IMG/VR virus record: IMGVR_UViG_3300043418_000114
Coordinates: 300,248 to 364,247 of that record
Strand: one strand, 5' to 3'
Length of the DNA: 64,000 nucleotides
Each line of letters begins with the position of its first letter. Within the stretch, counting starts at the first letter, position 1. Below are positions 39,358 through 62,045 of the stretch, one piece after another. Below the pieces are notes generated by a model. That model was not told the DNA's origin. It did not search any database and worked only from the letters and a program-made list of their open reading frames with translations. A program made the position numbers and the translations under genes.

Positions 39358-39358
39358 T

Positions 39359-41586: not shown

Positions 41587-41594
41587 TACTGGTA

Positions 41595-41602
41595 GATAAA
41601 TA
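41595..41602 (+). promoter_or_regulatory. T4-type late promoter box (GATAAATA), 4 nt before the ATG
   Basis: Intergenic; there is no SD sequence between the box and ATG 41607. Confidence 0.6.
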
Positions 41603-41606
41603 AAAC

Positions 41607-44766: not shown

Positions 44767-46681
44767 GAAGAAAATTAGTTTTGTCAACCCAAATTTTCAG
44801 CAAGGACCAAAAGAGTTCAATGCGTATTATTTGCCATATAGCCCTGCTATACTATGGTCTTATGTAGCACAATTTGAAAACATTACTGACGAATATGAGC
44901 TAGGTGAATTCATCTGGCGTAGAGATTTAATTGAAGATGCAGTAGCAAGATTGAAGGATCATGCTATTGTGGGATTCAGTACCTATATTTGGAATCGTAG
45001 TTATAATGCAGTGCTAGCACGTGAGTTAAAGAAAGCCAACCCAGACATTCTTATTCTTGCAGGTGGACCTGAGTACCCAATTGAGAAGCCTAACTTCTTT
45101 AAGACGTACCCATTCATTGATATTTGTGCTAAGTTAGAAGGGGAAAAATCATTCAAGCGAATACTTGAACACTTTTTAACCGACAAAGACTACACAAAGA
45201 TTCCAGGTCTATTGATTAATGACAATGGCAAGACTATTGATACTGGCGATGCAGTGCGTATAGACGACTTAGACACGATACCAAGTCCATATCTAACAGA
45301 CGTATTCAAGCCACTCATGGACAAACATCCTGAGATACGATGGAATGCTACACTAGAGACAAACAGAGGTTGCCCATACGCATGTACATTCTGTGACTGG
45401 GGTTCACTGACGTACAACAAAGTCAAGAAGTTTGACTTAGAACGTGTGTATGCTGAATTAGAATGGATCGGTAAGAACAAGTGTGATTTCGTTTCACTAA
45501 CTGATGCAAACTTTGGCATCTTCCCTGAGCGTGATAGTTTGATTGCTGATAAACTGATTGCCGTACAAAAAGAATACGACAATCCAAAAGCATACACGAT
45601 TGCATGGGCAAAGAATCAAAAGCGTGAAGTTGTGGAGATTGTACGCAAGTTGATTTACGAGGGTGGTTCTAAGATGGGACTTAACCTGAGTGTGCAATCA
45701 ATGGATGACAATGTACTTGAAATCATCAAGCGTAAGAATCTTGAAATGAACAAGATTACCGAAGTGTTTGAAATGTGTGAAGAATACAACATTCCATTAT
45801 ACACTGAATTGATTCTAGGATTACCTGGCGAGACATTGGAAACTTGGAAAGATAACTTCTACAAGTTGTACAAAGCAGGTAATCATACCGGTATTACCGT
45901 GTATCAGGCACAGTTACTAGAGAACGCTGAAATGAACTTGTTGCAACGCAAACTCTACAAACTAGAAGGTCGCATCGTATATGACTATCTAGTTGGTACG
46001 TACAATGAGCATGAGTTAAAAGAGGGCATTGAAGTTATTGTATCAACAAAAGACATGCCATTCGACAAAATGGTTGAAGCACAAGTGTTTAGTTGGTTTA
46101 TGAATACGTTCCATATCAATGGCATCACAAACTATATCAGTCGCTTTCTTGAAAAGTACAGTAACGTAGAGTACGAAGTATTCTACGGCAAACTTCTAGA
46201 GCATATCAAACAAGACGAATGGTTTGCAAGCGAGATTAAGCGCATAGAAGAACACTATAGCAATTGGACAACACACGGTCGCATTGACCACGAACCAATT
46301 CAAGGCATCGAGATTCATGGGTGGAACTTGATTCATAGTACACTGATTAATTTGCATGGCCAAGGTAAACACACGCATGTGTTCGATATCGTAGAAGACT
46401 TCACAAAGCAATTCAAATTGCCTGATGATATCTTTGCAGAATTGATGACACTGCAACGTACATTCTTAGTAGACCATAACAGTATTCAGCAATACCCAAA
46501 AACGCTATCATTCAAGCATGATATCCTAGGATATATTCAAACGAATATGGAACTGGACAAAGATGCAAGTTATGAGTTTGAGTTCCCGGAAGATAAAACA
46601 ATGAGTTTGCAAAGATTCTGCGAACAGATTTTCTTTGCTAGACGTAGAAACTTTGGCAAGTCTTGGATAACAAGGAAATAA
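44759..46681 (+). CDS. Cobalamin-binding radical SAM enzyme (class B methyltransferase-like)
   Basis: GFSTYIWN...AGGP B12-binding region, ETNRGCPYACTFCDWG, ILGLPGET; likely start MYKKKISF at 44759. Confidence 0.85.
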   Translation: MYKKKISFVNPNFQQGPKEFNAYYLPYSPAILWSYVAQFENITDEYELGEFIWRRDLIEDAVARLKDHAIVGFSTYIWNRSYNAVLARELKKANPDILILAGGPEYPIEKPNFFKTYPFIDICAKLEGEKSFKRILEHFLTDKDYTKIPGLLINDNGKTIDTGDAVRIDDLDTIPSPYLTDVFKPLMDKHPEIRWNATLETNRGCPYACTFCDWGSLTYNKVKKFDLERVYAELEWIGKNKCDFVSLTDANFGIFPERDSLIADKLIAVQKEYDNPKAYTIAWAKNQKREVVEIVRKLIYEGGSKMGLNLSVQSMDDNVLEIIKRKNLEMNKITEVFEMCEEYNIPLYTELILGLPGETLETWKDNFYKLYKAGNHTGITVYQAQLLENAEMNLLQRKLYKLEGRIVYDYLVGTYNEHELKEGIEVIVSTKDMPFDKMVEAQVFSWFMNTFHINGITNYISRFLEKYSNVEYEVFYGKLLEHIKQDEWFASEIKRIEEHYSNWTTHGRIDHEPIQGIEIHGWNLIHSTLINLHGQGKHTHVFDIVEDFTKQFKLPDDIFAELMTLQRTFLVDHNSIQQYPKTLSFKHDILGYIQTNMELDKDASYEFEFPEDKTMSLQRFCEQIFFARRRNFGKSWITRK

Positions 46682-46682
46682 G

Positions 46683-47453
46683 ATGATTGTTGACTGGAAA
46701 AAGTACAACAGATTTTTCGCATTTGGATGTAGCTATACCAAATATATGTGGCCAACATGGGCAGATGTTGTATCTAAAACAATGCCAAATGCTGAGTTCT
46801 ATAACTTAGGCAAATCAGGTGGCGGTAACCCCCTCATATCGTATAGAGTTGCAGAAGCAAATAATAGATTTAAGTTCACTGATACTGATTTGATAATGAT
46901 CATGTTTTCTTCATATACTCGTGAAGATAGATGGGTAGAATCATCTTGGCAAAGTTTCGGGAACGTGTATCAAAATAGTTACTATGGTGATGCATGGTGT
47001 AGAAAATATGCAGATGAACGAGGATATATGATTCGTGACGCCGCCGTTATTGATATGACACTCAAGTATGTTGATAGTATGCCATGTGATTCTTATAGCA
47101 TGTTGAGTGTTCCATTCGTGACTGAGGTGGAAGATAACAACAGCGGTGTAACACCAGAAGATATAGCTACACTATACAAGGACACATTTGGTCGATTTAA
47201 ACCATCGTTCAAAGAATTAGAAATAATGCCAAACCCAGTTCTGGACTATAGTGGATTTCAAGATGGACATCCTGCTACGATTCGTCACTATAATTATCTA
47301 AGTAAATTGGGATTTGCACTTTCGGATGCATCCAAACAATTCGCAGACGAATCTACTGAAATATTGAAAACAATAAAGGCACGTAATCTAGTGCCAACTT
47401 ATTTTCCTGAACAAGACAACATGATTTCACTCACTGATAGGATAATGTTTTGA
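46683..47453 (+). CDS. SGNH/GDSL-like protein
   Basis: FGCSYT, NLGKSGGGN and C-terminal DGHP. Confidence 0.6.
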   Translation: MIVDWKKYNRFFAFGCSYTKYMWPTWADVVSKTMPNAEFYNLGKSGGGNPLISYRVAEANNRFKFTDTDLIMIMFSSYTREDRWVESSWQSFGNVYQNSYYGDAWCRKYADERGYMIRDAAVIDMTLKYVDSMPCDSYSMLSVPFVTEVEDNNSGVTPEDIATLYKDTFGRFKPSFKELEIMPNPVLDYSGFQDGHPATIRHYNYLSKLGFALSDASKQFADESTEILKTIKARNLVPTYFPEQDNMISLTDRIMF

Positions 47454-48631: not shown

Positions 48632-48689
48632 CGCTATTGCTTTTTTCTCTTAAATATCATATAATTTAAGAAGATAAAGGAGCTTGTTT

Positions 48690-50945
48690 TTGGATTTCAA
48701 TTTAAAATCACTTGCGGTTGATGAATTAAAACCGAAGGAACGTCCCACAGAGGACATTGCAGATGCTCGTCATCGTAGTATGATGGAAGCAATTGCACCG
48801 TATGCTAAGAAATCTGTACAAAAAAACTTAACTCCAGTTTACGTAAACTACAAAACTCGTAGCACTAAACTAGCATTGGTTCTATGCCCAGAATGGAGCC
48901 CTCATATGCCACCATTCAGTCTTGCTAGACTAAGTGGCGTTGCAAAGAGTGCTGGTTATGAAACTCACATCATGGACTTGAACGTGAAAGCGTACAATGC
49001 ATATCGTGATGATTGGTCAGTTAACAACAAACTACCGTTTAGACTGTGGGATCCAAGTGCATCATGGCATTGGCTAGGTGATACCTATCTGAAAGATATT
49101 CACCCTGTACTTGAACCTATCTTATCTGAGGCAGTAGATCAGATCGTAGAGATGAATCCAGATGTAGTTGGTTTCTCGGTATATTACATCAGTGAAGAAC
49201 CAACTAAGTGGATGTGTCAAGAGATTAAACGCAGAGCGCCACACATCAAGATCGCAGTTGGTGGTCCAAACGTACACAAGAGTTGGTTCAAGATTGAAGA
49301 CTACTATGATTACGTTGTAGTGGGTGAGGGTGAAGCTAACTTACTTGTCATGCTCGATGAAATCGAAGACAAGAAAGAAGTAGAGTATCCTCGCATTCTA
49401 ACACAACCAGAAGAAGAACGAATTAACATTAACGGGCTACCAATGCCTGATTATGAATCAATCGACTTTAACCTATACGAGTTGCCAAACGGCGTTAACT
49501 CAGAGATTAGTCGAGGCTGTACAGCTAAGTGTACATTCTGTGAAGAAACTCACTTCTGGAAATATCGTCAACGTCAAGCAGTTGACTTGATTGATGAAAT
49601 CGAATGGTTGTACTACAACAAGGGCACAGATATTATCTGGTTCATTGACAGTCTTATCAATGGCAACCCTAAAGAACTACGTGCATTCGCATTAGCACTC
49701 AAAGAAAAGAATTTGAAAGTTCGTTGGACTGGCTATGCTCGTTGTGATGGCCGCATGGACTATGAATATCTCAAAGACTTGGCCGATGGTGGTTGTATTA
49801 TGTTCAACTTTGGTGTTGAATCAGGTTCGCAAAAAGTACTTGATGATATGGCCAAAGGTGTAACCATTGCAGAGATGGAACAGAACTTCATCGACTGTAA
49901 GAAAGTTGGCATCTATTGCGCTACTAATTGGATTGTTGGATTCCCGACAGAAGATTACCAAGACTATGCAGATAGCATGACGTTGCTATGGCGTATGCGT
50001 AATAACAATATCAACAACGCTGGTCTAGGTGTCGGATATGGCCTAGGTCCTGAGACAATTGTAGGTCAACACCCACACAAGTTCAACATCAGTTGGCACA
50101 AGTATCAAGGACATTGGATTACTAAAGATTTGTCACGTGGCGGCACACATCTAATGATGCGTGTTAAAACATGGCACATGTTTGCTGACTTCCTACAGGG
50201 TTGTACCGAAGTGCCTATTGGATATCCTGTACGACATGCATTAGCAAAAGAACATTACAAAGTAACATTCGATGATCCTACAGTGATGAATGAAATCGAA
50301 TATGAAAAGTTTGACTATAACATAATCAAAGACAATGGAACTCCATTTGCCGATCAGTTGGTAAATGAAATGTGGCCGTTCTTTAGAATGTTGTGGAAGT
50401 GCAGAGGCGGATACGAAGCAGAAGTTAAGTTTAATCCAGAGATTGACTTGCGAGAATTTGGCCAGCAGTTTGGCCCTGGTATGTTCAACGCAGTGTTCAA
50501 GTTCAAGATCGATGCCGCAGGTAAATGGTCTGCTGACTTTGATATTGATTTTAAACAGATTGATAATCCATTTGATGATAGATTGCCACCGCCAGAAGGA
50601 CGCAAAGGTCCGTTCTATGCACAAGACTATTCTCGTTTACAAAGCAACACTAGCAAACGTGCTAGAAAGCTAGCAAAGCCTGAATGGGACATTGAAGAAG
50701 GTCGTAGTGGTACTGACTTTGGCGCATTACTTGATGAGGAAGCACACTTGAACGCTACAGTAGATTTTACATTCAATCTACAGTGGGCAGGTACTGGTGA
50801 TTGGGGAGACTTTGCAAACTATCAAGTTGAAGTTAGTAAAGTCAAACGTGAAGTGATGCCAGAAAAAGAAGTGATGCATTCACCCGAGATCATATCTATT
50901 CCTCTATCTGACATTAAACGTAAACGTCCACAATTTCCAGTATGA
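48690..50945 (+). CDS. Cobalamin-binding radical SAM enzyme
   Basis: DVVGFSVY, VGGP, GEGE, SRGCTAKCTFC, GVESGSQKVL and IVGFPTE; AGGAG RBS spacing favours TTG 48690; TAAATA box at 48651-48656. Confidence 0.85.
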   Translation: MDFNLKSLAVDELKPKERPTEDIADARHRSMMEAIAPYAKKSVQKNLTPVYVNYKTRSTKLALVLCPEWSPHMPPFSLARLSGVAKSAGYETHIMDLNVKAYNAYRDDWSVNNKLPFRLWDPSASWHWLGDTYLKDIHPVLEPILSEAVDQIVEMNPDVVGFSVYYISEEPTKWMCQEIKRRAPHIKIAVGGPNVHKSWFKIEDYYDYVVVGEGEANLLVMLDEIEDKKEVEYPRILTQPEEERININGLPMPDYESIDFNLYELPNGVNSEISRGCTAKCTFCEETHFWKYRQRQAVDLIDEIEWLYYNKGTDIIWFIDSLINGNPKELRAFALALKEKNLKVRWTGYARCDGRMDYEYLKDLADGGCIMFNFGVESGSQKVLDDMAKGVTIAEMEQNFIDCKKVGIYCATNWIVGFPTEDYQDYADSMTLLWRMRNNNINNAGLGVGYGLGPETIVGQHPHKFNISWHKYQGHWITKDLSRGGTHLMMRVKTWHMFADFLQGCTEVPIGYPVRHALAKEHYKVTFDDPTVMNEIEYEKFDYNIIKDNGTPFADQLVNEMWPFFRMLWKCRGGYEAEVKFNPEIDLREFGQQFGPGMFNAVFKFKIDAAGKWSADFDIDFKQIDNPFDDRLPPPEGRKGPFYAQDYSRLQSNTSKRARKLAKPEWDIEEGRSGTDFGALLDEEAHLNATVDFTFNLQWAGTGDWGDFANYQVEVSKVKREVMPEKEVMHSPEIISIPLSDIKRKRPQFPV

Positions 50946-51532
50946 ACAAGGTAAGAGAATTTGAGTATGAAATGGCGCACTTCTACAATGCGCCATATGC
51001 TGTTGCCACCGACTGTTGCACTCATGCTATTGAATTGTGTCTACGCTTGTTTAATCCAGTTGCTGTGACATGTCCTAATCATACCTATGCAAGTATCCCA
51101 ATGACATTTGAGAAGTTGAAGATACAATGGAATTTCCATTCTATTCATTGGAAAGACTATTATTTTATCGGCAACACAAACATCATCGATGGTGCAGTTT
51201 ATTGGAAACAGAATGGATACATTCGCAACACCATGATGTGTTTGAGTTTTCAATACAAGAAACACTTGAACATTGGTCGTGGCGGAATGATTCTGTTAGA
51301 TAACAAAGAACAATACGACCAGCTATTAAAGATGCGGTACGACGGTAGGACAGATGATAAGCCTTGGGCAGAGCAAGATATCGACTCCTTAGGATATCAC
51401 TACTATATGACGCCTGAGCAAGCAGAGATTGGTCTAGAAAAACTAAAGACAGCCAGAGCGACAGAACCTAAGCGATGGTCATCAAAAGACTATCCAGATT
51501 TGAAACAAATGAAAGTATTCAATGCTAAGTAA
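50942..51532 (+). CDS. Short DegT/DnrJ/EryC1/StrS-family PLP aminotransferase
   Basis: FE..MA...APYAVATDCCTHAIELCL, IIDGA and LSFQYKKHLNIGRGGMIL (PLP-lysine region); only 196 aa. Confidence 0.75.
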   Translation: MNKVREFEYEMAHFYNAPYAVATDCCTHAIELCLRLFNPVAVTCPNHTYASIPMTFEKLKIQWNFHSIHWKDYYFIGNTNIIDGAVYWKQNGYIRNTMMCLSFQYKKHLNIGRGGMILLDNKEQYDQLLKMRYDGRTDDKPWAEQDIDSLGYHYYMTPEQAEIGLEKLKTARATEPKRWSSKDYPDLKQMKVFNAK

Positions 51533-52502
51533 AAACGAATGGGATCCACTAGAAGTAGTAATGGTAGGCAGTGCCAGTGGAGCACGTATTCCATTACTAG
51601 ATACAAGTCTACGCTGTGTGAATTATGCAGACAGGCATTATACATATAATATTCCAATGGGTCCTTACCCACAGCAAGTTATTGATGAGGCAAACGAAGA
51701 CTTAGACACACTTGCTAAGTGGCTAGAGAGTAAAGATATTACGGTACTACGTCCAGACGATTCAGTTGTTCCTAAATACTATAACTACTGCCCAAGAGAC
51801 AACATCATCGTACATGACTATCAGATGTTTGCTACTCCTATGCCACTCAAAGCTAGACAGGATGAATTCAAAGCATTTGCAAAAGAACTCACTGGTTATG
51901 GCAAAATACTTGCTACAAGATTTGAACGTAACCTTAGCTTGTACAACACCAAGTGCATTGAGAACCCAGACATTCTTGCATTGACAGAGACCGAGCCTGC
52001 ATTTGATGCCGCTAATATACTACGTTCAAACGACGATCTATTTTATCTCGTGAGTAATAGTGGCAACAAGAAAGGTGCAGAGCTATTGCAGTTTATGTAT
52101 CCTGATAAGAAGGTCCATCTAATTGAAGGCGTGTATAGTTACATGCATTTAGATAGCACGATTGCATTGTTACGTGAAGGTCTTATGTTGTTGAATCCTG
52201 CACGAATCAAAAGCGTAGATCAATTGCCAGAGGCACTCAGAAACTGGGATGTGATTTGGTGTCCTGAGCCAGTAGATATCGGTCATTACCCTGATTACTG
52301 CAATGCCAGCACGTGGATAAATATGAATCTACTCAGTGTTAATCCTGAGTTAGTTATCATTGAAGAACATCAGAACAATTTACGAGTTGAATTAGAAAAG
52401 CATGGCATTGAATCAGCTATGTTACCAATGCGACATGCACGTACATTGGGAGGTTGTTTTCACTGTGTAACTTTAGATATAAAGAGAAAGCACAATGCAT
52501 AA
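51522..52502 (+). CDS. Amidinotransferase (StrB1 inosamine-phosphate / glycine amidinotransferase family)
   Basis: NEWDPLE..MVG, YCPRD, FDAAN, SNSGN, HLDST, W..MN.LS and C-terminal RTLGGCFHCVTLD catalytic Cys motif. Confidence 0.9.
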   Translation: MLSKNEWDPLEVVMVGSASGARIPLLDTSLRCVNYADRHYTYNIPMGPYPQQVIDEANEDLDTLAKWLESKDITVLRPDDSVVPKYYNYCPRDNIIVHDYQMFATPMPLKARQDEFKAFAKELTGYGKILATRFERNLSLYNTKCIENPDILALTETEPAFDAANILRSNDDLFYLVSNSGNKKGAELLQFMYPDKKVHLIEGVYSYMHLDSTIALLREGLMLLNPARIKSVDQLPEALRNWDVIWCPEPVDIGHYPDYCNASTWINMNLLSVNPELVIIEEHQNNLRVELEKHGIESAMLPMRHARTLGGCFHCVTLDIKRKHNA

Positions 52503-54279
52503 ATGGTCACGTGGACATATTGGTAGATTTTGGGATTTGAATAGTTTCAAAGAATTCCAATACACCAAGCAACCAGTCACTCAAGAAGAAATCGATGAAT
52601 GGCTAGCCAATGGCTATGATCATGTAAAGAGTTTCACTGGGTCAATGTATGACAGTAGAAACCCAATGCCAGAATGGGTCAATAACTTTGGCGCCATATT
52701 TGGTCATGAGTATATAAATCTAACATACACATTCTATAGAATGTCCACGTTAGAAATAATGCCGACTCACGTGGATCATTATAGAACATATCGAAAGATA
52801 TTCAGTGCAGAATATAAGAATGTGCGAAGAATCTTGGTGATGCTAGAAGATTGGAAGCCTGGACATTATCTAGAGATTAATGGCACTGGCATTGTCAACT
52901 GGGTAGCAGGAGATTATTTCATGTGGGAAGGCGATTGTCCTCATGCCGCTAGTAATATAGGCATAGACGATAGATACACATTGCAAATAACATGTGAACA
53001 AGTAGATAATACTCCAGTGTGGGACGCAGATAGAATATGGAAAAACATTCATTGGTATAACGTGCCTGATCTACGCACTATCAAAGAGTCAACTAGTCCA
53101 ATGATGTCCAGAGTAATTGAGGCATGTGATAATCATAATGGTGATCCATGGATGGTATACATGTACAATGAAAAAATTGCCTCATTGGAACAAATTACCC
53201 ATACTCCAGAAACTGTAGCACACTTGAACGAAAAGGGTTTACAGATATATCTATATGAACCTCTGTGTAGTTACAAAGTAGGTGCCACTCAGTTATATCC
53301 TCCAACGGGAACCAAGCACACTCGATGGTTCTATTCTGAATTTGACGATATCGATCCACAGGATTTGCGTAGTGATGAATTAGATAGTATTCGTGAGTAT
53401 GTCATTAAAAACAAATTAACTAACGTCACTGTTAGAACGTGTGATTATGATGCACATAAATATTACCCTTACTATGCAGAGCATATGAATGTGGTGACAG
53501 ATGACATGTTCCTAAAGACGATCTTTCCTATCACATTGCGTAAGCCTGAATTAGCGAAACACTTCACCAAGCGATTTATATGCTTGAATTGGCGATATAC
53601 TCCACATAGACATTTGATCGCTAGTTATGTAGCAAACAAGAATAGTTTAACTGGCTGGTATTTCAAGGGCGATGTATTTACCATTCACAAGAATGTATGG
53701 TACAACATATATGAGTGGGAAAACAAAAACCCAACTGCATTTCAGGGAGTGCTCCAAGGTTTATCATATATCAATACACACGCTCCATTGAACGTTGATT
53801 TAGATATCGAAGATGCTGTACTGATTACTGATCCATATTTCATGGATTATTGGCCTAAGTCCAAAACGCTTACATCAGGAGTAACTCCGTCAAATACAAA
53901 TCCAGAAACAAACGTCTTGGAGAAGTTTTACAATGATGTGTTTTGTGATATTGTCAATGAAACTAGATTTGCACAACCCACTGGCAATTATAGTGAGAAA
54001 ACATATCAAGCAATGTATTACTTAAAGCCATTTGTATTATGTGCGCCGCCCCATACTCTGAAATATCTAAAAGAGCAGGGGTTTAAAACGTTCAGTGATT
54101 TCTGGGATGAATCATATGATGAATGTGAAAATCACGAGCAACGATTGTTTAAGATATTCGAAGTGATAGATTTCATCAATGGAAAATCAATGAATGAACT
54201 AAGAGAAATGTACGCCAAAATGAGTGATATTTTGGAACACAATAAAGAATTATTGAATAAGAAAGTTATTCCTGTATGA
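52495..54279 (+). CDS. Fusion of an N-terminal 2OG-Fe(II)/cupin-like oxygenase domain and a C-terminal 'ET...SEK...KPF' domain
   Basis: HVD...H...R (PTHVDHY...CPHAASN...RYTLQIT); the C-terminal half resembles 41607-42917. Confidence 0.55.
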   Translation: MHKWSRGHIGRFWDLNSFKEFQYTKQPVTQEEIDEWLANGYDHVKSFTGSMYDSRNPMPEWVNNFGAIFGHEYINLTYTFYRMSTLEIMPTHVDHYRTYRKIFSAEYKNVRRILVMLEDWKPGHYLEINGTGIVNWVAGDYFMWEGDCPHAASNIGIDDRYTLQITCEQVDNTPVWDADRIWKNIHWYNVPDLRTIKESTSPMMSRVIEACDNHNGDPWMVYMYNEKIASLEQITHTPETVAHLNEKGLQIYLYEPLCSYKVGATQLYPPTGTKHTRWFYSEFDDIDPQDLRSDELDSIREYVIKNKLTNVTVRTCDYDAHKYYPYYAEHMNVVTDDMFLKTIFPITLRKPELAKHFTKRFICLNWRYTPHRHLIASYVANKNSLTGWYFKGDVFTIHKNVWYNIYEWENKNPTAFQGVLQGLSYINTHAPLNVDLDIEDAVLITDPYFMDYWPKSKTLTSGVTPSNTNPETNVLEKFYNDVFCDIVNETRFAQPTGNYSEKTYQAMYYLKPFVLCAPPHTLKYLKEQGFKTFSDFWDESYDECENHEQRLFKIFEVIDFINGKSMNELREMYAKMSDILEHNKELLNKKVIPV

Positions 54280-55028
54280 AGAAAAAGATATTTTTAATAG
54301 CTGGTTGCAGTCACGCCGCTGGCAGTGAGATAGATGGCACAGAAGATAGTGAGTACAATCGTCATCATTGTTTTGGTAGCGTACTAGCAAACAGATTGGG
54401 ATATTATCCAATCAACTTAGCGATTGCAGGTAACTCAAATAGCGGTATAGCTAGAAGTGTATTGAAATGGTTTGAAGCAAACTATAATCCAGATGAAATG
54501 GAAGTGTTTGTGTCAATTACATGGACAGACAGTTCTAGATTCGAAGCTCCTGTAGAGCGTCCAGTCAATCTACCTGAGCCTATATGTGCAAATTGGGTAG
54601 ATATTACAGCTAGAAGTTTTTATAGAATAACTATGGGTTATAAAGGTTGTGATGCTATTCCAGGTGAAGTCGAAATGACCAAACGCATTCATCGATTTGT
54701 CGCCGAGAATGAACGATTTATGGAAATACTTTCCATGAACTATGTGTTACAAATGCAATACTTCTTGAATTCCAAAAACGTCAAGTATGTTATGTCTAAT
54801 AGTATGCCAATGTATTATGGCAATCACGAGCATCTTGGTTTCTATATGAGTTTGGTAGACGCAACTAAATATTATGGATTGTATAACACAAACGAGGCAT
54901 TCTTTCTTAAATACCAACAAGAAGGATATGTAAACAAAAAGGCAAAGTATTGGCATCATGACGAAACCCCGCATGAGCTATTTGCGGATGAGTTATACAA
55001 TTTTATCGAGAACAACAAATGTTTATAA
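54276..55028 (+). CDS. SGNH/GDSL-like protein
   Basis: AGCSHAAG, NLAIAGNSN and C-terminal YWHHDE. Confidence 0.55.
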   Translation: MKKKIFLIAGCSHAAGSEIDGTEDSEYNRHHCFGSVLANRLGYYPINLAIAGNSNSGIARSVLKWFEANYNPDEMEVFVSITWTDSSRFEAPVERPVNLPEPICANWVDITARSFYRITMGYKGCDAIPGEVEMTKRIHRFVAENERFMEILSMNYVLQMQYFLNSKNVKYVMSNSMPMYYGNHEHLGFYMSLVDATKYYGLYNTNEAFFLKYQQEGYVNKKAKYWHHDETPHELFADELYNFIENNKCL

Positions 55029-55117
55029 TCAACTTTTTCAAGAACTTAGTGCGAGAATACAAGTATCGCAAACGCATTAAAGAATTACGCAAACGAGATC
55101 CATTCATCTACAAATGA
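55019..55117 (+). CDS. 32-aa basic peptide (MFIINFFKNLVREYKYRKRIKELRKRDPFIYK), absent from the ORF track
   Basis: Fills the gap exactly; overlaps the upstream gene and is ATGA-coupled to the carbamoyltransferase. Confidence 0.7.
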   Translation: MFIINFFKNLVREYKYRKRIKELRKRDPFIYK

Positions 55118-56592
55118 AATATCTAGGAATCTCAGCAGGCTTTCATGATGCCGCGGTTAGCGTCACCGATGATAATGGCAATATCTTATTTGCAGGTCAT
55201 AGTGAACGCTACAGCAAAATCAAACATGACAAGAATCTATGTCCTGGTATCATCCAGGATGCATTGTCGTATATAGGCAATGAAGACTACGAAGTTCATT
55301 ATTATGAGCGTCCTTGGCTAAAAACACTACGTCAAATTCGTTCTGGAGAACCACTTACTAGTATTTTTGCTAGTAATATCATTGGCAAAGACATTCATAG
55401 AATGCTAGGTCTAAGAAAGATTCACACTCATAATCACCATTTGTCACATGTTGCGTCTGGTTTTCAAACTAGCCCATTTGAAGATGCTACGGTGGTCGTG
55501 ATTGACGCTATTGGTGAGTTTGATACTGTCACAATTTGGGATGCACGTTACGAGAACGGCAAAGCTAAGTACAAGAAATTGTACAGCGTTAAATACCCAG
55601 ATTCGATAGGCTTGTTCTATTCAGCAATGACAGAACGAGTTGGTCTAAGACCGCTAGACGAAGAATACATTCTAATGGGAATGGCGGCATACGGCAAGCC
55701 TATCTATTACTCCGAAATGCATAGTGAATTGCTTGATTCTAGTTTAGACTTACGTTTTAAAAACAATTTGCATACTGGTGTTGGTAAAGAGTTTCTAGCA
55801 GATGCCGATGACATGGACATTGCGGCCAGTGCCCAAGTATTAGTAGAGCACCTAATTCAAAACGTGATGCACAAAGCTAGTATCTATGGCAAGAGCAAGA
55901 ATCTTGTTTATGGCGGCGGGGTAGCATTGAATTGTTTGGCTAATAGACTGATAGGAAAATACTTTGAAGATATTTGGATTATGCCTAATCCTGGTGACGC
56001 CGGTAATAGCCTCGGGGCTTGCGCTTTGGGCTATGGGAGAAAACTTAACTGGGATAATGCTTATCTCGGTCATGATATTCGAGGCCCTTATCCTAGTAAT
56101 GACATTGTTACTGAGTTACTTACTCGAAAAATTGTGGGAGTGGCATCCGGGAGAGCCGAGTTCGGGCCCCGCGCACTCGGAAACCGTAGCCTCCTTGCGG
56201 ACCCTAGAGGCGGCAAAATTAAGGAGACAGTAAATGAAATTAAACGTAGACAACAATTCAGACCATTTGCGCCAGTCATTCTGGAAGAAATGGTTGATGA
56301 TTACTTTATTATGCCTGACGGTTGGCGTGATAGTAGGTATATGCAAGTCATCGCTACTTGTAGGTATCCTGAGTTATTTCCTGCTATCGTTCATGCTGAC
56401 GGCACTTCTCGTGTCCAGACTGTGCCAAAAGATGGAAGCGGAATCAGAGAACTCCTTGAAAAGTGGTATGTAATGACTGAATGTCCGATTCTACTCAACA
56501 CGAGTTTGAACATTCGAGGCGAGCCTATGGTCAATGACCGCAGTGATGCAGACAGATTTGAAAAACAATACAACGTTAAAGTGATATCATGA
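55114..56592 (+). CDS. O-carbamoyltransferase (NodU/CmcH/TobZ family)
   Basis: LGISAGFHDAAV, ERYS..KHD, HHLSH, DAIGE, MGMAAYG, GGVALNC.AN, EFGPRALGNRSLLADP, FRPFAP, HADGTSRVQTV and LNTSLN. Confidence 0.93.
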   Translation: MKYLGISAGFHDAAVSVTDDNGNILFAGHSERYSKIKHDKNLCPGIIQDALSYIGNEDYEVHYYERPWLKTLRQIRSGEPLTSIFASNIIGKDIHRMLGLRKIHTHNHHLSHVASGFQTSPFEDATVVVIDAIGEFDTVTIWDARYENGKAKYKKLYSVKYPDSIGLFYSAMTERVGLRPLDEEYILMGMAAYGKPIYYSEMHSELLDSSLDLRFKNNLHTGVGKEFLADADDMDIAASAQVLVEHLIQNVMHKASIYGKSKNLVYGGGVALNCLANRLIGKYFEDIWIMPNPGDAGNSLGACALGYGRKLNWDNAYLGHDIRGPYPSNDIVTELLTRKIVGVASGRAEFGPRALGNRSLLADPRGGKIKETVNEIKRRQQFRPFAPVILEEMVDDYFIMPDGWRDSRYMQVIATCRYPELFPAIVHADGTSRVQTVPKDGSGIRELLEKWYVMTECPILLNTSLNIRGEPMVNDRSDADRFEKQYNVKVIS

Positions 56593-57356
56593 TGAATGAT
56601 ACTATAGTCGTATGTGGCGATAGTTTTATGTCTCCTGTTATTGGTAAATATGCAAATACACACTTTTCAGAACTACTAGCAAAAAAACTAGGGTATGAAT
56701 TAGTTTGCCTATCACGTGGCGGCGCAAGCAATGGTGCTATATGCCTACAGATAACAGAGGCCATTAAATTAAAGCCAAGTCTGATTTTATATGGCATTAC
56801 ATCATCGGACAGAATAGAAGTCAATGCCACTAGTGATCCATATCATTCGTTGAATCGTCCAATAGACATTCGTGATGTAATATATTCACATTCAAGTAGT
56901 CTTAGTTCACGGGACAACTCACTCAATATCACTGCAACATTAATTAGTGATACGTTACTTCCAATGTTAGATACAGCACATCCATCAAATATCAAAACAG
57001 CTTATGCTAGTGTAAAGGATATTGATATGAAAGCAGATGCAATCAAACAGTGGTTTACTCATATGTATCATGCGGAATGGAAACGACAGCAGGATTCTTG
57101 GATGTTATACGCTGTTGTACATTTATTGCATTCTAGTGGAATTCCATATGTAAAAGTTCATGATTTGATGCAAGATACTGTGCCTACACCAGAGTGGTCG
57201 ACCGTACCAGGCGTGGTCGTAGATAACGAATTGTTTCCTGTAATATATGATCCTAGTCCTGATGCACCAATGTATCACACATCACCCGAATCGCAATTAA
57301 TAATCCTAGAAAAGATTGAGAAAATCTTAGCTGACACCTATAACATTCATAAGTAA
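56589..57356 (+). CDS. SGNH/GDSL-like protein
   Basis: CGDSF, RGGASN and C-terminal MYHT. Confidence 0.5.
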   Translation: MMNDTIVVCGDSFMSPVIGKYANTHFSELLAKKLGYELVCLSRGGASNGAICLQITEAIKLKPSLILYGITSSDRIEVNATSDPYHSLNRPIDIRDVIYSHSSSLSSRDNSLNITATLISDTLLPMLDTAHPSNIKTAYASVKDIDMKADAIKQWFTHMYHAEWKRQQDSWMLYAVVHLLHSSGIPYVKVHDLMQDTVPTPEWSTVPGVVVDNELFPVIYDPSPDAPMYHTSPESQLIILEKIEKILADTYNIHK

Positions 57357-57361
57357 CATAT

Positions 57362-60300
57362 ATGCTAAGAGATGTATTTTATTATGGGAAGAAACCTAAC
57401 GTTCATCCCAGAGAAAAGTTTGCAATAAATTTAGATGATGCCAAGCGGCAATCATCCACTGAACACTTCTGGATCATAAACGAGTTTTGTGACTATAAGG
57501 GATTTGACTGGGACTTTGATTTTGAATTCTTGCCTGACGAAGATGTGTGGGCAGAAGAACACAATAACGTATGGCCAAGTGTACATCAAAAAGATAGTGG
57601 CACGTGGCTATGCAACACTGATAACAACGAAGCATTGACAATTTATCGTGCCGATGTTGAACCACTAAAGCGTAAAAAAGAAGCATTCGATCACTGGGTA
57701 GTTAACTATGCTATCACAGATGGGTTTGATTTTTCATGGCATCATGACCCGTCAGATCCACCATTCATTTATGTTTGGGGTAATCAATTTTACCCTGGGA
57801 CAGTTATGCCAACAGTTGAATATCATGTTGAAGGCGCAACTGAACGCAAATACATGGATTTGTTTGTGCCTACATTAGCACAGAACAAAGATAGATTCGA
57901 AGTACTAGACGATATTGAAGATTTTGATTATAGTTGGATGCCAGATCCAACTAGTCCACCCTACATTTACGTATGGGGCAATCAATGGAACTCAGCAGAA
58001 GATAAAGCGGCTATAAAATATACAGTCGAGGGCGCGACTGAATACAAGTATATGGCTACACGTGCAAAACGTAGAGCTAATATGCAGTATTGGACCGTGC
58101 CGGATAATGTTGATGTTAGTGATTTCGATTTTAGTTGGGAACCTAACCCTCATGATCCACCATTCGTGTATCAATTCGGCACTCAGCACCAACGCACGGG
58201 TGGCCCTGTTTATACTATTCCAGGAGCAACAGAAGTTAAGTACGTTGATGTAATTCATGCAATGGCTCCTGTTGATATGACATATTGGCACGTGCCAGAC
58301 AATCTAAAAATAGTTGACTTCGACTTCTCATGGCATCCAGATGCACTAGACGGGCCATACATTTATGTTTTTGGAACACAATGGGCACTGACTGGTGGTC
58401 CAAAATACGTAGTGCCAGGCGCAGATCAAAAGAAGTACATTGATGCAATCATTGCCACTGTGCCACCAAACCTAGCTAACTGGGAAATTCCTACTGATAT
58501 TGCAGTAGATGAATTTGATTTCTCATGGCATCCATACGAAGATGATGAGCCCTACATCTATCAGTTTGGCACTCAGTGGCAGAAGACTGGCGGCCCACGT
58601 TACGTTACACCTGGTACTGATGAAATGTCTCCCATCAAATATGTAGACACTCGCATTATCAAAGCTAGAAAACTTCCTAAGCGTGATAACTGGACAGTGC
58701 CAGATACCATTGAAGAAGACAGTATTGATTTCTCATGGCATCCTGATGACACTGAACCAGCATTTGAGTATCAGTTTGGTACTCAATGGCAGAAGACAGA
58801 TGGTCCAGTTTACACCGTGCCAGGTGCAACACAATCTAAGTTTGTATCAGTCAACAAAGCACGTATCAAACCTAACATGAGTAATTGGCAATTGCCAGAG
58901 GGACTTGATGCTAAGAAGTTTGACTTTTCATGGCACCCTGACAGCACAGTTCCTGTATATGTTTACCAGTTCGGTACATTACTAGATGATATTCACCTAG
59001 AAGACGGCCCACGTTATGTAACACCTGGCAATGATGGTCATGTTGTGTACATGGAAAACGACGAGATTCTTACTGATGCCATCGAATATCCAAAGTACTA
59101 TATCACAACTACATTAGATGATTTGATTCAGCAACACAAAGATGAAACATTCTGGGCGTTACGTGAAAACATTGATTACGCTGATTTTGATTTTGCATGG
59201 AGACCTACGAAAGAAAACGTCTTCCACATTAACGCATTTGGTTCACCTGATAGCGAATCAACTCAGTCATATCTTGTCAATGGCAAGATGATTCAGCAAG
59301 GTCATTCTCATATCAATTTCATCGAGAATATTAAGCTAGACGAAGAATACTTGGCCAAATTGTTTAAGCCAGTTAGTATGTTCTTTGTTGATCGTGGTAA
59401 CAGTGAAACCCAAGAACGATTTGATAGATTGAAGCTACGTTTCCCTGACATTCAAAAGACTAGATTCTTGAACACATGGGTAGATACAATCAACCGTTGT
59501 ATCAATCGTAGTTCAACTGAATTGTGCTGGATTCTGAACAGCGAACTTGACTATAGCGATTTCAACTTTGAGTACTATCCTAATCCATGGCAAATGAAAA
59601 TGGTCCACGTGTTTGGTACTCAATGGTCTCATTGGGGCACAACGTTTATGGTCAATCGTGATTCGTTTGCAGAAGATACCAAGTACATTAAAGTCATTGA
59701 ACACTTGAGTAACTTGAACTTTGTAAAGAATCGCAGAGCAAAGGCCACTAACGTTCTATATGACGTTATCTACATTGATCATGGCACTACCGATATTACT
59801 CCTGGCACAAACGTAATTGTGTATGAAGATAGCTATCTCACAACGTTCAAAAAGATGTTGGAGAAGTTACCTACAAAGAAAGAACACTATGTTTGGGTTT
59901 GCTCAAGCGTATGTGATTATGCTGACTTTGATTTCACTTACATTTGTGATCCATTTGCACGTGAGCAATTGCACGTATTCCCTAGTGACAAACAAAAGTT
60001 TGGCGATACATTCTTAATCAACGTAAACAAGTTGCGTGAGTTGATTACGGACATGGAGAAACTAGAAGATTACGAAAAGATCAGCTATAACCAGCACCAA
60101 AGAGCAAAGCGATTGCCTGCTCCAACTATAATTACAAAGGAAGATACACATGTCTCTACTATTCACACTGATTTTAATTGGCCTTATGCTACGTTTGTCA
60201 CGGAAGACAACGCCGAAATAGAATCTGTTTACTCAGAACCAATGAGCCTATGGGCACCTGAACACAAGAATATCACAATCACCAGTACCGGCGGCACTCG

Positions 60301-61066
60301 CATTGTTGTACCGCGTGAGGCCAAAGAACATGTTAAGCGTGAATTGTATGATTACCCATACATCATCACCAATAGTAAATTGGCTAAGTCTACACCAATG
60401 GACATTGTATTCTTGTCGAACGGCGAGACAGGAGCAGAGGAAAACTATGAGCATTTGTTGAAAACAACACATGGATTAGCCAATCGTGTTGTTCGAGTCG
60501 ATGGAGTTAAAGGTCGTGTTCAAGCGTATCATGCCGCACTTGAAGCAAGTAACACACCTTGGGCTTTCACAGTCTTTGCGAAGTTAAAAGTCAGTAACAA
60601 ATTTGATTGGAACTGGCAACCAGATAGACTACAGATTCCTAAGCATTATGTATTTCATGCTAAGAATCCGGTGAACGGACTAGTCTATGGTCACCAAGCA
60701 ATGATTGCCTATAACAAGAAACTTACACTTGCCAATCAAGGCAAAGGTCTAGACTTTACAATGGACGATGAACATGAAGTTGTTGAAATTGTCTCAGGTG
60801 TTGCAAACTTTAATACTGATGAATGGTCAACCTGGCGTACTGCATTCCGTGAAGCACTCAAACTACGTGCTAACACAGACGAAGTAAGTAAGAATAGACT
60901 AGAGTTTTGGCTAACAGTTGGGTCAGGTAAGTTCTCTCAGTATAGTATTGATGGAGCATCTGACGCAGTTAAGTACTATGAGGAAGTCAATGGAGATTTT
61001 GAGAAATTGAAGTTGAGTTATGAATGGGAATGGCTACGCGAATTCTATCAGCGCAAGTATAAATAA
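57362..61066 (+). CDS. 1234-aa repeat protein with a C-terminal glycosyltransferase-like domain
   Basis: Seven tandem ~66-aa FDFSWxP repeats; C-terminal DIVFLSNGE..A..N, RVDGVKGR..AYH, NPVNGLVYG and WRTAFRE motifs shared with 34489-35445. Confidence 0.65.
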   Translation: MLRDVFYYGKKPNVHPREKFAINLDDAKRQSSTEHFWIINEFCDYKGFDWDFDFEFLPDEDVWAEEHNNVWPSVHQKDSGTWLCNTDNNEALTIYRADVEPLKRKKEAFDHWVVNYAITDGFDFSWHHDPSDPPFIYVWGNQFYPGTVMPTVEYHVEGATERKYMDLFVPTLAQNKDRFEVLDDIEDFDYSWMPDPTSPPYIYVWGNQWNSAEDKAAIKYTVEGATEYKYMATRAKRRANMQYWTVPDNVDVSDFDFSWEPNPHDPPFVYQFGTQHQRTGGPVYTIPGATEVKYVDVIHAMAPVDMTYWHVPDNLKIVDFDFSWHPDALDGPYIYVFGTQWALTGGPKYVVPGADQKKYIDAIIATVPPNLANWEIPTDIAVDEFDFSWHPYEDDEPYIYQFGTQWQKTGGPRYVTPGTDEMSPIKYVDTRIIKARKLPKRDNWTVPDTIEEDSIDFSWHPDDTEPAFEYQFGTQWQKTDGPVYTVPGATQSKFVSVNKARIKPNMSNWQLPEGLDAKKFDFSWHPDSTVPVYVYQFGTLLDDIHLEDGPRYVTPGNDGHVVYMENDEILTDAIEYPKYYITTTLDDLIQQHKDETFWALRENIDYADFDFAWRPTKENVFHINAFGSPDSESTQSYLVNGKMIQQGHSHINFIENIKLDEEYLAKLFKPVSMFFVDRGNSETQERFDRLKLRFPDIQKTRFLNTWVDTINRCINRSSTELCWILNSELDYSDFNFEYYPNPWQMKMVHVFGTQWSHWGTTFMVNRDSFAEDTKYIKVIEHLSNLNFVKNRRAKATNVLYDVIYIDHGTTDITPGTNVIVYEDSYLTTFKKMLEKLPTKKEHYVWVCSSVCDYADFDFTYICDPFAREQLHVFPSDKQKFGDTFLINVNKLRELITDMEKLEDYEKISYNQHQRAKRLPAPTIITKEDTHVSTIHTDFNWPYATFVTEDNAEIESVYSEPMSLWAPEHKNITITSTGGTRIVVPREAKEHVKRELYDYPYIITNSKLAKSTPMDIVFLSNGETGAEENYEHLLKTTHGLANRVVRVDGVKGRVQAYHAALEASNTPWAFTVFAKLKVSNKFDWNWQPDRLQIPKHYVFHAKNPVNGLVYGHQAMIAYNKKLTLANQGKGLDFTMDDEHEVVEIVSGVANFNTDEWSTWRTAFREALKLRANTDEVSKNRLEFWLTVGSGKFSQYSIDGASDAVKYYEEVNGDFEKLKLSYEWEWLREFYQRKYK
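57695..59070 (+). repeat. Seven tandem ~200-nt coding repeats (W.VP....FDFSWHPD...PYIYQFGTQWQKTGGP.Y.VPGA...KY)
   Basis: Visible in the protein, and in the DNA as recurring tt(c/t)tcatggca and tttggcactcagtggcagaagac-like strings; boundaries are approximate. Confidence 0.85.
61058..61065 (+). promoter_or_regulatory. Perfect T4 late promoter box TATAAATA
   Basis: Exact consensus, 4 nt upstream of ATG 61070. Confidence 0.7.
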
Positions 61067-61825: not shown

Positions 61826-61837
61826 TAAGGAAGTTTA

Positions 61838-62044: not shown

Positions 62045-62045
62045 T

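Follow-up and report, generated by a model that had tools for sequence, protein, structure and literature searches.

In streptomycin biosynthesis, StrB1 serves as the L-arginine:inosamine-phosphate amidinotransferase, and its substrate is a phosphorylated cyclitol rather than a sugar. TobZ and NodU carbamoylate sugars, and the Ugd-ArnA-ArnB route leads to the cationic 4-amino-4-deoxy-L-arabinose on lipid A. The radical SAM enzymes BtrN, GenK, and AprD4 belong to aminoglycoside pathways, and PLOD3 and mimivirus L230 are bifunctional lysyl hydroxylase/glycosyltransferases. Phage carbamoyltransferases have long been known (PMC3037559), and one of them acts on 5-hydroxymethylcytosine in DNA (PMC8670742). 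In the cultured Synechococcus phage S-SCSM2R, ORF305 to ORF310 are annotated as "AHBA synthase," radical SAM, glycosyltransferase, 2OG-Fe(II) oxygenase, inosamine amidinotransferase, and GT2 (PMC12801897); a 2025 paper named them "antibiotic synthesis genes" and left their role unclear (PMC12801897).

Here, we analyzed a 64-kb stretch (the window) of a 364-kb environmental phage genome, myovirus-like and of jumbo type, that carries a related cassette. Its mini-DegT and amidinotransferase are 54% and 59% identical to those of S-SCSM2R, where the same genes lie in a co-directional block with glycosyltransferases. However, the oxygenase domain is a separate gene in S-SCSM2R (33% identity), whereas that of the window is fused to a GT-B-like domain, and the window adds a dehydrogenase, a B12 radical SAM enzyme, a DUF6071 protein, a peptide, a carbamoyltransferase, and a repeat protein. 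The initial annotation had called a cationic guanidino and carbamoyl decoration not established for phages; this has to be qualified, as the same genes were published in S-SCSM2R without one (PMC12801897) and phage carbamoyltransferases were already known (PMC3037559, PMC8670742).

Operon architecture and conservation

The cassette lies within a sugar-modification cluster of ~27 kb, directly preceded by baseplate and fiber genes, in which all genes are on one strand (plus). Six open reading frames occupy 50942-56592, exactly the positions initially proposed, and each start overlaps the preceding stop by 4 to 11 bases throughout. Overlaps of this size run from 46683 to 57356 in these translationally coupled genes, and sites resembling promoters or terminators did not exceed chance within the cluster. 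The same coupled operon includes two upstream partners. The first is an NDP-sugar dehydrogenase of UDP-glucose type (47450-48631; TIGR03026, 158.8 bits; phrog_9148, 1.9e-97); the second, a B12-binding radical SAM enzyme (48684-50945; B12-binding and Radical_SAM, Pfam), has a stop (50945) that overlaps the mini-DegT start (50942). Both are ~70 to 73% identical in 27 to 34 related loci, and relatives carry dehydrogenase-GT-B-like fusion proteins.

Farther upstream lie a GT-A-like protein (34489-35445; alignment), four N-terminal-twitch radical SAM paralogues with one short radical SAM (35439-41586), a GT-B-like paralogue (41607-42917), an NAD epimerase/dehydratase (SDR; 42914-43894; Epimerase, 148 bits) with weak similarity to ArnA (35 bits), a 305-amino-acid (aa) protein without family, a KedN5-type B12 radical SAM C-methyltransferase (44684-46681), and after it, still within 34489..47453, a 256-aa protein without family. 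NF033640 matches in the 34489-47453 region scored 315 to 379 bits (cut-off 170). The KedN5-type call is a best-hit assignment, because NF033712 scored 247 bits against a cut-off of 700.

In 66 of 69 independent viral loci, S-SCSM2R among them, the amidinotransferase occurs together with both the mini-DegT and the oxygenase domain. A carbamoyltransferase lies downstream of the amidinotransferase in 31 loci, in two divergent forms (~70% and ~29% identity). The set recurs in dozens of viral contigs. A gene of 32 codons (55019..55117), which encodes a very basic peptide without a Pfam match, is kept in 19 other loci, and the C-terminal motif of the peptide is invariant. The gene overlaps the carbamoyltransferase start with its stop and sits beside a ~70%-identity carbamoyltransferase in 19 of 20 loci. 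Its codon differences are mostly at third positions (938 synonymous versus 89 nonsynonymous); together with the 66/69 co-occurrence, this indicates that the arrangement is not due to chance. The translational coupling, and the linkage of the cassette genes across divergent viral lineages, support the earlier proposal of a single pathway for amination, amidination, and carbamoylation. The gene inventory of the initial annotation is likewise supported.

Enzymes of the cassette

The first gene (50942..51532) encodes a DegT/DnrJ/EryC1/StrS-family PLP aminotransferase-like protein with predicted activity (PF01041, 64.8 bits; Pfam cut-off 19.8). At 196 aa, it is about half as long as is usual in the family (~360 aa), with ~40 aa missing from the N terminus, several loops absent, and no C-terminal small domain. 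Alignment with a full-length DegT placed the PLP lysine at an invariant Lys107 in an S-F-x-x-x-K motif, with T27, S102, and D83 conserved. The PDB sugar aminotransferases 4ZWV and 4XAU matched at ~6e-7, and the best 120 of 7,778 homologues were 192 to 207 aa long.

The second product (51522..52502; 326 aa) is predicted to be a StrB1-like arginine-dependent amidinotransferase of pentein fold. It matched StrB1 (PDB 1BWD) at 236.5 bits (E = 4.9e-69, residues 4 to 322), versus 137 bits for HsvA, 120 for AGAT, and 107 for SxtG. The similarity to StrB1 is full length at comparable size (StrB1 is longer, with 348 aa), AGAT-type extensions are absent, and the Cys, His, and Asp residues are kept. Across 15 viral homologues, there is no variation at the catalytic Asp (CPRD), Asp (FDAAN), His (YMHxD), or Cys (FHCVTLD). 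In a search covering 1.84 billion representatives, only ~10 of 888 representative clusters gave a bit score above that of StrB1. These results bear out the StrB1 likeness noted in the initial annotation.

The third protein (52495..54279; 594 aa) appears to join two domains. Residues ~1 to 175 are predicted to form an Fe(II)/2-oxoglutarate-oxygenase-like double-stranded beta-helix, and residues ~183 to 594 a divergent GT-B-like domain, a probable glycosyltransferase. The AlphaFold model had a pLDDT of 88.4, and the oxygenase domain matched the folds of AsqJ, AndA, SptF, FtmOx1, and proline hydroxylases (~3e-6). Its residues H92, D94, H150, and R160 do not vary across 41 distinct homologues. The oxygenase fusion first proposed is retained as an oxygenase-like fold, assigned by structure prediction and fold search together with an invariant HxD...H...R motif. 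A stand-alone oxygenase orthologue (locus L040) matched PF05118 (23.3 bits, cut-off 22.6), the Asp/Asn beta-hydroxylase family, which hydroxylates proteins and lipids. The C-terminal domain modeled well (pLDDT 91.2, pTM 0.91) and is paralogous to the protein at 41607-42917 (hhalign E = 2e-64); nearly all of the PDB matches listed for it were GT-B enzymes, with weak scores (E = 4e-4 to 2e-2; TM 0.2 to 0.37).

The fourth gene (54276..55028), present in 15 to 16 related loci, encodes a 250-aa protein that matched PF19547 (DUF6071) at 29.8 bits (cut-off 27); a PDB sequence search gave no match. It is possibly an SGNH-like esterase or acyltransferase; of the SGNH assignment made initially, what stands is this near-cut-off match and a Ser-containing N-terminal motif.

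The last cassette gene (55114..56592; 492 aa) has both Carbam_trans_N (129 bits) and Carbam_trans_C (157.6 bits) domains well past the Pfam thresholds, as well as a match to phrog_1601 (2.5e-93). Its PDB matches were NovN (4.3e-49), GdmN, and TobZ (1.4e-36), spanning 1e-36 to 4e-49. Like TobZ, NovN, GdmN, and NodU, it has a two-domain build, Kae1-like plus YrdC-like, and it is predicted to be a NodU/CmcH/TobZ-family O-carbamoyltransferase dependent on ATP and carbamoyl phosphate. It differs from the matched PDB chains in being shorter (492 versus 576 to 702 aa) and in the gene for the 32-aa basic peptide ahead of it, of which the matched entries give no sign.

Proposed sugar tailoring and the alternatives

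Judged from the genes alone, the cassette probably decorates a sugar with guanidino and carbamoyl groups. At roughly even odds (probability about 0.5), we read it as the tailoring core of a phage glycan pathway acting on a sugar, nucleotide-activated or glycan-bound, and not on a cyclitol. The NDP-sugar dehydrogenase, the SDR, and the GT-A-like and GT-B-like paralogues support a sugar substrate. The closest cellular relatives (43 to 52% identity over the full gene) also occur in sugar contexts, including an O-antigen-type cluster. An Acidobacteriota amidinotransferase (45% identity) lies among Wzy_C, GT4, GT2, polysaccharide deacetylase, full-length DegT, and SDR genes; in a Pseudobdellovibrionaceae metagenome-assembled genome, mini-DegT, GT-B-like protein, and amidinotransferase form a bare unit of three genes; and DegT and/or SDR genes were within 8 kb in 10 of 13 cellular loci. 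In Bdellovibrio sp. HCB2-146, an operon reads radical SAM, dehydrogenase, SDR, mini-DegT, with the amidinotransferase 5 kb off.

The gene order dehydrogenase, SDR, mini-DegT in this Bdellovibrio relative resembles the Ugd-ArnA-ArnB route, in which a dehydrogenase yields a keto sugar that a DegT-family enzyme transaminates to a cationic sugar. In contrast to that route, an ArnA-type formyltransferase and ArnT were not found with the phage cassette, which adds amidino transfer, an oxygenase, and carbamoylation.

From the observed family membership, catalytic motifs, gene coupling, and conserved synteny, we infer substrates, step order, and acceptor as follows. A keto group would be made on a sugar, possibly derived from UDP-glucose via the adjacent dehydrogenase, with either the SDR or, at a carbinol carbon, the oxygenase-like domain as oxidant. 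The mini-DegT, with PLP, would convert the keto sugar to an amino sugar, and the StrB1-like enzyme, through its Cys-His-Asp center, would transfer the amidino group of arginine to the sugar amine, giving a guanidino sugar. The GT-B-like domain of the fusion and its paralogues may transfer sugars to the acceptor. The NodU/TobZ-type enzyme would O-carbamoylate a hydroxyl via carbamoyl-AMP, perhaps assisted by the 32-aa peptide, and the DUF6071 and GDS-motif proteins may act on ester groups. A cationic, carbamoylated glycan would result. Among the candidate acceptors (virion, host surface, and DNA), a virion or host-envelope glycoconjugate is most likely, since the cluster directly follows the baseplate and fiber genes.

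Several observations count against a sugar substrate. The window yielded no nucleotidyltransferase, flippase, or polymerase; the mini-DegT is missing the small domain; the GT-B assignment comes from weak fold matches; and we know of no precedent for a guanidino sugar in a polysaccharide. In addition, StrB1, the closest characterized enzyme, uses a phosphorylated cyclitol; distant amidinotransferase relatives (31 to 43% identity) carry a fused TauD oxygenase, HalD-type halogenase, NRPS A-T module, or aaRS-like domain; and the stand-alone oxygenase orthologue matches a beta-hydroxylase family. Judging by these fusions, the amidinotransferase family also works on amino acids, and the pairing of oxygenase and amidinotransferase is found outside sugar chemistry as well.

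In an unlikely alternative, the oxygenase hydroxylates either a free amino acid or a residue in a phage protein (e.g., the repeat protein), and the GT-B-like domain attaches a sugar to it, as collagen lysyl hydroxylase/glycosyltransferases do; the amidinotransferase makes a guanidine from an amine, for instance on the side chain of lysine or ornithine. The TauD, HalD, and NRPS fusions and the Asp/Asn hydroxylase match of the stand-alone oxygenase favor it, as do the adjoining P4H-like oxygenases and GT25-like proteins in S-SCSM2R-type loci and the large repeat proteins that come after the cassette. The fusion also mirrors PLOD and L230 in joining a 2OG oxygenase and a glycosyltransferase-type domain in one polypeptide; however, domain order and families differ from those of PLOD3 and L230, with no sequence relationship detected and no match in any search. 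The top PDB fold matches include the protein glycosyltransferases SdgB, HMW1C, and EarP, although fold matches do not tell acceptors apart. It is hard to see what a DegT-family aminotransferase would do on a protein side chain, and the presence of the NDP-sugar dehydrogenase and the SDR, along with O-antigen-type surroundings in cells, favors sugar chemistry.

A route in which the cassette makes a cyclitol or aminoglycoside-like small molecule bearing guanidino and carbamoyl groups, with the twitch radical SAM enzymes acting, BtrN-like, on inosamine-type intermediates, is improbable. In its favor, StrB1 is the best characterized relative of the amidinotransferase, exceeded by few clusters; the cluster holds four N-terminal-twitch and two B12 radical SAM enzymes; and TobZ, a structural relative of the carbamoyltransferase, has an aminoglycoside substrate. 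However, Pfam and NCBIfam searches of the region from 29 to 64 kb, where several genes lack assignment, detected no inositol-phosphate synthase, inositol dehydrogenase, kinase, or phosphatase, and 2-deoxy-scyllo-inosose synthase was likewise not detected there. Unlike StrB1, the phage enzyme has no cyclitol-making or -phosphorylating genes around it; it is surrounded by nucleotide-sugar enzymes and glycosyltransferase-like proteins, and its nearest homologues in cells belong to polysaccharide or sugar operons, not antibiotic clusters. The streptidine/bluensidine route of the initial annotation is therefore not supported.

That the carbamoyltransferase, perhaps with glycosyltransferase-like and amidino steps, decorates hydroxymethylated phage bases against restriction is quite improbable, since inspection of the 64-kb window of the 364-kb genome revealed no gene for a hydroxymethylase, a TET/JBP-like enzyme, a DNA kinase, or a DNA glycosylase-type enzyme, and cellular homologues lie in polysaccharide clusters. 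A phage-encoded NodU/TobZ-type enzyme of the same family does produce 5-carbamoyloxymethylcytosine in DNA (Yang et al. 2021; PMC8670742), the GT-B fold matches include a phage DNA glucosyltransferase and T4 beta-glucosyltransferase, the very basic peptide could bind nucleic acid, and Campylobacter phages have distant amidinotransferases. However, the partner of that enzyme is an Asp177-type thymidylate-synthase homologue, whereas the window's gene sits in a sugar operon and the only such homologue seen, beside DHFR in a related phage, has the Asn177-type motif that is tied to unmodified contigs (PMC8670742).

Proteins downstream of the carbamoyltransferase

The next gene (56589..57356) encodes 255 aa, including an N-terminal G-D-S motif, and recurs in just 2 other loci; its product had no match in Pfam, NCBIfam, PHROG, or PDB searches and is a possible GDSL/SGNH-like protein. 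It is followed by a 1,234-aa protein (57362..61066) with six to seven copies of an F-D-F-S-W-x-P / Y-x-F-G-T-Q motif and no family match in Pfam, NCBIfam, or PHROG. Homology to the GT-A-like family of 34489-35445 extends over its C-terminal ~230 aa, which lack the D-G-D motif of that family. Repeat proteins of this type come after the carbamoyltransferase in ~19 loci, at times as two to four tandem paralogues.

Gene content of the cassette

The six plus-strand open reading frames (ORFs) of the cassette (50942 to 56592) had exactly the bounds assigned to them by the initial annotation, overlapping one another by 4 to 11 bases. The second ORF (51522 to 52502, +) encodes a pentein-superfamily amidinotransferase with full-length similarity to StrB1, scoring 236.5 bits against this enzyme (PDB 1BWD; residues 4 to 322) compared to 137 for HsvA, 120 for AGAT, and 107 for SxtG. 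The StrB1 likeness proposed in the initial annotation was therefore borne out, and bit-score ranking against PDB entries places the predicted enzyme in the StrB1-like branch. Although 888 related clusters were found among 1.84 billion representative proteins, only ~10 outscored StrB1; cluster look-up showed that the ten best-scoring were almost only unnamed metagenome proteins. The catalytic Cys (in a C-terminal F-H-C), His, and two Asp residues aligned with those of StrB1 and were invariant in 15 viral homologues. Four relatives in the representative library (P0256, P0264, P0282, and P0321; 31 to 43% identity) were fused to other domains: a class II aaRS-like domain, a TauD oxygenase, a HalD-type halogenase, and an NRPS adenylation-thiolation module.

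The first gene (50942 to 51532, +) encodes a half-size, 196-aa member of the DegT family (mini-DegT), which matched PF01041 at 64.8 bits (gathering score, 19.8). Rather than the complete fold-type-I architecture (~360 to 400 aa), the protein covers only profile positions ~30 to 243 of 360, with internal deletions; compared to full-length DegT, ~40 residues are missing at the N terminus, as are several of the internal loops and the entire C-terminal small domain. By its sequence, mini-DegT departs from DegT-family architecture yet keeps the cofactor motifs. Alignment with the full-length DegT of a bacterial relative showed K107 (the Schiff-base lysine of S-F-x-x-x-K) and S102 to be invariant, the phosphate-loop Thr to be retained, and Asp83 to be nearly invariant. 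Given 7,778 homologues, the best 120 of which are all 192 to 207 aa long, we regard mini-DegT as a stable family rather than a truncation.

The third gene (52495 to 54279, +) encodes a 594-aa protein with 463 homologues, all unnamed. Neither this protein nor the u436 and u318 families yielded anything significant in Pfam, NCBIfam, PHROGs, or PDB sequence searches, and its fold was obtained from structure prediction only (pLDDT 88.4), which gave two domains. The N-terminal domain was modeled as a double-stranded beta-helix, with AsqJ, AndA, SptF, FtmOx1, and proline hydroxylases as top PDB fold matches (E ~3e-6). The H-x-D...H iron triad and the downstream 2OG-carboxylate Arg (H92, D94, H150, and R160) were invariant in 41 distinct homologues, a set of fused and stand-alone genes (25 of them stand-alone). 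Predicted fold and motif thus agree in identifying an Fe(II)/2-oxoglutarate-oxygenase-like domain. One stand-alone orthologue also reached the Pfam threshold for Asp/Asn beta-hydroxylases. When the C-terminal domain was modeled alone (pLDDT 91.2, pTM 0.91), the PDB fold matches listed were nearly all GT-B and mostly glycosyltransferases, at weak scores (E 4e-4 to 2e-2; TM 0.2 to 0.37); the GT-B identity had no Pfam or PDB sequence match. The domain is paralogous to the product of 41607 to 42917 (hhalign E=2e-64), and no curated family covers either the fusion or this paralogue family. In a viral structure library, it matched uncharacterised Caudovirales proteins, one with a fused UDP-glucose dehydrogenase; that relatives carry such fusions with an NDP-sugar dehydrogenase speaks for a sugar-nucleotide role of the GT-B-like domain. 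One relative with a stop codon (L065:11468-12733) was left out of one alignment.

The remaining genes encode a DUF6071 protein (54276 to 55028, +; 29.8 bits, cut-off 27), a 32-aa peptide (55019 to 55117, +), and a NodU/TobZ/NovN-type carbamoyltransferase (55114 to 56592, +). A further protein, just downstream (56589 to 57356, +), carries a G-D-S motif in translation. PDB sequence search returned no match for an SGNH/GDSL assignment of this protein or the DUF6071 protein, and a literature search on DUF6071 was uninformative. The C-terminal 16 codons of the peptide showed 938 synonymous versus 89 nonsynonymous differences over 120 pairs, mainly at third positions, a synonymous excess that marks 55019 to 55117 as a real gene by its substitution pattern. 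The carbamoyltransferase matched Carbam_trans_N (129 bits, cut-off 24) and Carbam_trans_C (157.6 bits, cut-off 27), with NovN, GdmN, and TobZ as PDB matches; it is an ordinary member of its family, unusual in its peptide partner.

Conservation across viral loci

A megablast search with the cassette gave no match among GenBank phages. With the amidinotransferase, 69 viral loci were retrieved (52 to 100% identity), against which all window proteins were compared by tblastn. Mini-DegT and the oxygenase domain each had matches in 66 of the 69, and the carbamoyltransferase in 31 (20 at ~70% identity and 11 at ~29%). Matches to a B12 radical SAM enzyme (27 to 34 loci), the NDP-sugar dehydrogenase (28 loci), and the repeat protein encoded downstream (19 to 35 loci) were also found. 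The peptide occurred in 19 loci, always accompanying the ~70% carbamoyltransferase, and in one locus stood before mini-DegT instead. That the radical SAM enzymes act on the product of this ORF as a RiPP precursor was rejected as the main reading, because the peptide tracks the carbamoyltransferase (19/20 loci) and is absent from five radical-SAM loci that have no carbamoyltransferase.

Two arrangements were seen. The first, window-like and found in jumbo phages, runs from the dehydrogenase through a GT-B-like protein, the B12 radical SAM enzyme, mini-DegT, and the amidinotransferase to the oxygenase-GT fusion, DUF6071 protein, peptide, carbamoyltransferase, and repeat protein. The second is compact, consisting of mini-DegT, a stand-alone oxygenase, the amidinotransferase, a GT25-like protein, and the carbamoyltransferase. 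The cultured Synechococcus phage S-SCSM2R has the same core genes as the window; between its mini-DegT and oxygenase lie genes for a radical SAM enzyme and for a glycosyltransferase. Its describers called the core genes "antibiotic synthesis genes" and wrote that their purpose "remains unclear" (PMC12801897). This is the one earlier sighting of the cassette genes in a cultured phage, and it came without an explanation. Two further proteins of S-SCSM2R, both reported in its virion proteome (PMC12801897), are a distant second "glycine amidinotransferase" (ORF266) and a prolyl dihydroxylase-like protein (ORF269).

Sugars and other candidate substrates

We propose, with a probability of roughly one in three (about 0.35), that mini-DegT, the oxygenase domain, and the StrB1-like amidinotransferase, often together with the carbamoyltransferase and the 32-aa peptide, constitute a widespread, uncharacterised viral pathway that adds guanidino (N-amidino) and O-carbamoyl groups to sugars of virion or infected-cell glycans. 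The cassette lies in the middle of a cluster (~34.5 to 61 kb) in which all genes are on the plus strand and the majority of starts overlap the previous stop; promoter-like and terminator-like sites were no more frequent there than in shuffled sequence. The cluster encodes the NDP-sugar dehydrogenase and an SDR epimerase/dehydratase along with GT-A-like and GT-B-like paralogues. Its radical SAM enzymes include four of the N-terminal-twitch type and two of the B12 type, one of the latter having its best NCBIfam match in the KedN5 C-methyltransferase subfamily (247 bits, under the 700-bit cut-off).

Relatives of the amidinotransferase were found in 13 cellular loci (full-gene identity 43 to 52%, with one partial match at 58%), with DegT and/or SDR genes within 8 kb in 10/13. 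In an Acidobacteriota genome, the amidinotransferase gene has Wzy_C, GT4, GT2, polysaccharide deacetylase, full DegT, and SDR genes around it. In Bdellovibrio sp. HCB2-146, twitch-type radical SAM genes surround it, and the locus includes a radical SAM-dehydrogenase-SDR-mini-DegT operon. A Pseudobdellovibrionaceae MAG has a bare three-gene unit of mini-DegT, GT-B-like protein, and amidinotransferase. Literature searches on amidinotransferases in O-antigen clusters and on twitch radical SAM enzymes in phages were uninformative. Given these cellular contexts, the sugar enzymes of the cluster, and its lack of recognisable cyclitol-supply or phosphorylation genes, a sugar scaffold, nucleotide-bound or glycan-bound, is favoured. 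On this scaffold, a keto group would be converted to an amino and then a guanidino group, with O-carbamoylation in addition. The keto-forming step is uncertain and could fall to the SDR or to the oxygenase domain, the latter being far more constantly linked to mini-DegT and the amidinotransferase. We infer substrates, order of steps, and acceptor from gene-level evidence.

Some observations count against a sugar and bear on the alternative of a protein or amino-acid substrate: distant relatives of the amidinotransferase are fused to TauD, HalD, NRPS, and aaRS-like modules, and the oxygenase is similar to hydroxylases of proteins and lipids. The oxygenase-GT fusion also recalls collagen-type hydroxylase/glycosyltransferases in its architecture. 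Set against these are the sugar genes around the phage and cellular enzymes.

The carbamoyltransferase could instead act in DNA hypermodification, since a phage enzyme of the same family produces 5-carbamoyloxymethylcytosine in DNA (PMC8670742). Carbamoylation of 5hmC would be indicated if the carbamoyltransferase had an Asp177-type thymidylate-synthase homologue (dCMP hydroxymethylase) as its partner; none was found within the 64-kb window. The 10 kb past the window end have a DHFR gene at their end; in a related phage, taken as a proxy, the gene next after DHFR encodes a thymidylate-synthase homologue that has an Asn177-type motif. Because this motif is associated with unmodified DNA (PMC8670742), the related phage's enzyme makes DNA modification less likely. 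Right behind these two genes, the related phage (ENA ERZ19038934) has a second sugar block (11745 to 16651 of its own contig), comprising an Asp/Asn-hydroxylase-family protein, an SDR, a full-length DegT, and a radical SAM enzyme.

The initial annotation had proposed a streptidine- or bluensidine-like pathway to a guanidino- and carbamoyl-bearing sugar or cyclitol. Its cyclitol branch found no support: among ORFs of at least 100 aa between 29 and 64 kb, five of which stayed without assignment, Pfam and NCBIfam identified no inositol-phosphate synthase, inositol dehydrogenase, cyclitol kinase, or phosphatase. Despite its StrB1-like amidinotransferase, the predicted pathway is probably not that of streptidine. 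A saxitoxin-type pathway was rejected, SxtG being the weakest PDB relative and polyketide-like genes being absent.

Phage sugar chemistry is known mainly as simple glycosyltransfer or auxiliary LPS genes. We rate the cassette among phage glycan and sugar modification clusters, as a conserved tailoring line of several enzymes whose homologues abound in metagenomes and viromes (~7,800 for mini-DegT and 463 for the oxygenase-GT fusion). To our knowledge, a permanently cationic decoration of the guanidino/carbamoyl type is undescribed for glycans of any virus or for bacterial polysaccharides; sugars bearing both groups, if made, would represent a new kind of charged glycan. The sugar pathway would also explain what the "antibiotic synthesis genes" of a cultured cyanophage do, add two compact new enzymes (a PLP aminotransferase of half the usual size and an amidinotransferase directed at sugars), and be relevant to the ways in which large phages change adsorption, superinfection, or cell-surface recognition. 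This potential for new chemistry is real but unproven.

Genome setting and neighboring features

The window is the final 64 kb of a 364,247-bp IMG/VR contig. An equal-sized contig opened at another start point was found in a second sample, which makes a circular, complete phage genome probable. The first 11 kb of the window encode the hub and wedge proteins of a baseplate, and a single 6,067-codon ORF (11088 to 29291, +) lies between baseplate wedge genes and fibre-like genes. One fibre-like gene had a sub-threshold match to the Peptidase_G2 intramolecular-chaperone domain (21.1 bits, cut-off 25).

Four N-terminal-twitch radical SAM paralogues (NF033640, 315 to 379 bits) stand in tandem at 35439 to 41586 (+), together with a shorter fifth radical SAM gene; NF033640-type homologues are those flanking the Bdellovibrio amidinotransferase. 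Downstream of the cassette, the 1,234-aa repeat protein (57362 to 61066, +) has a terminal domain homologous to the GT-A-like family, a stand-alone copy of which is encoded at 34489 to 35445 (+). The conserved D-G-D motif of this family is lost in the repeat protein. Related loci encode 2 to 4 tandem copies of the protein, up to 2,220 aa in length.

A permuted (two-piece) tmRNA gene was found at 61764 to 62185 (+; Rfam RF04321, 113.7 bits, cut-off 47), with a tag predicted by ARAGORN as ANDSVFALAA and a terminator-like hairpin downstream (62225 to 62246). Because permuted tmRNAs are confined to few bacterial lineages, it may hint at the host. The region's best promoter-like match (63121 to 63149) precedes a tRNA gene (63161 to 63235, +; Rfam tRNA, 54.9 bits) with anticodon CTA, which reads amber UAG and is labeled tRNA-Pyl by ARAGORN; long ORFs nearby read well in the standard code.
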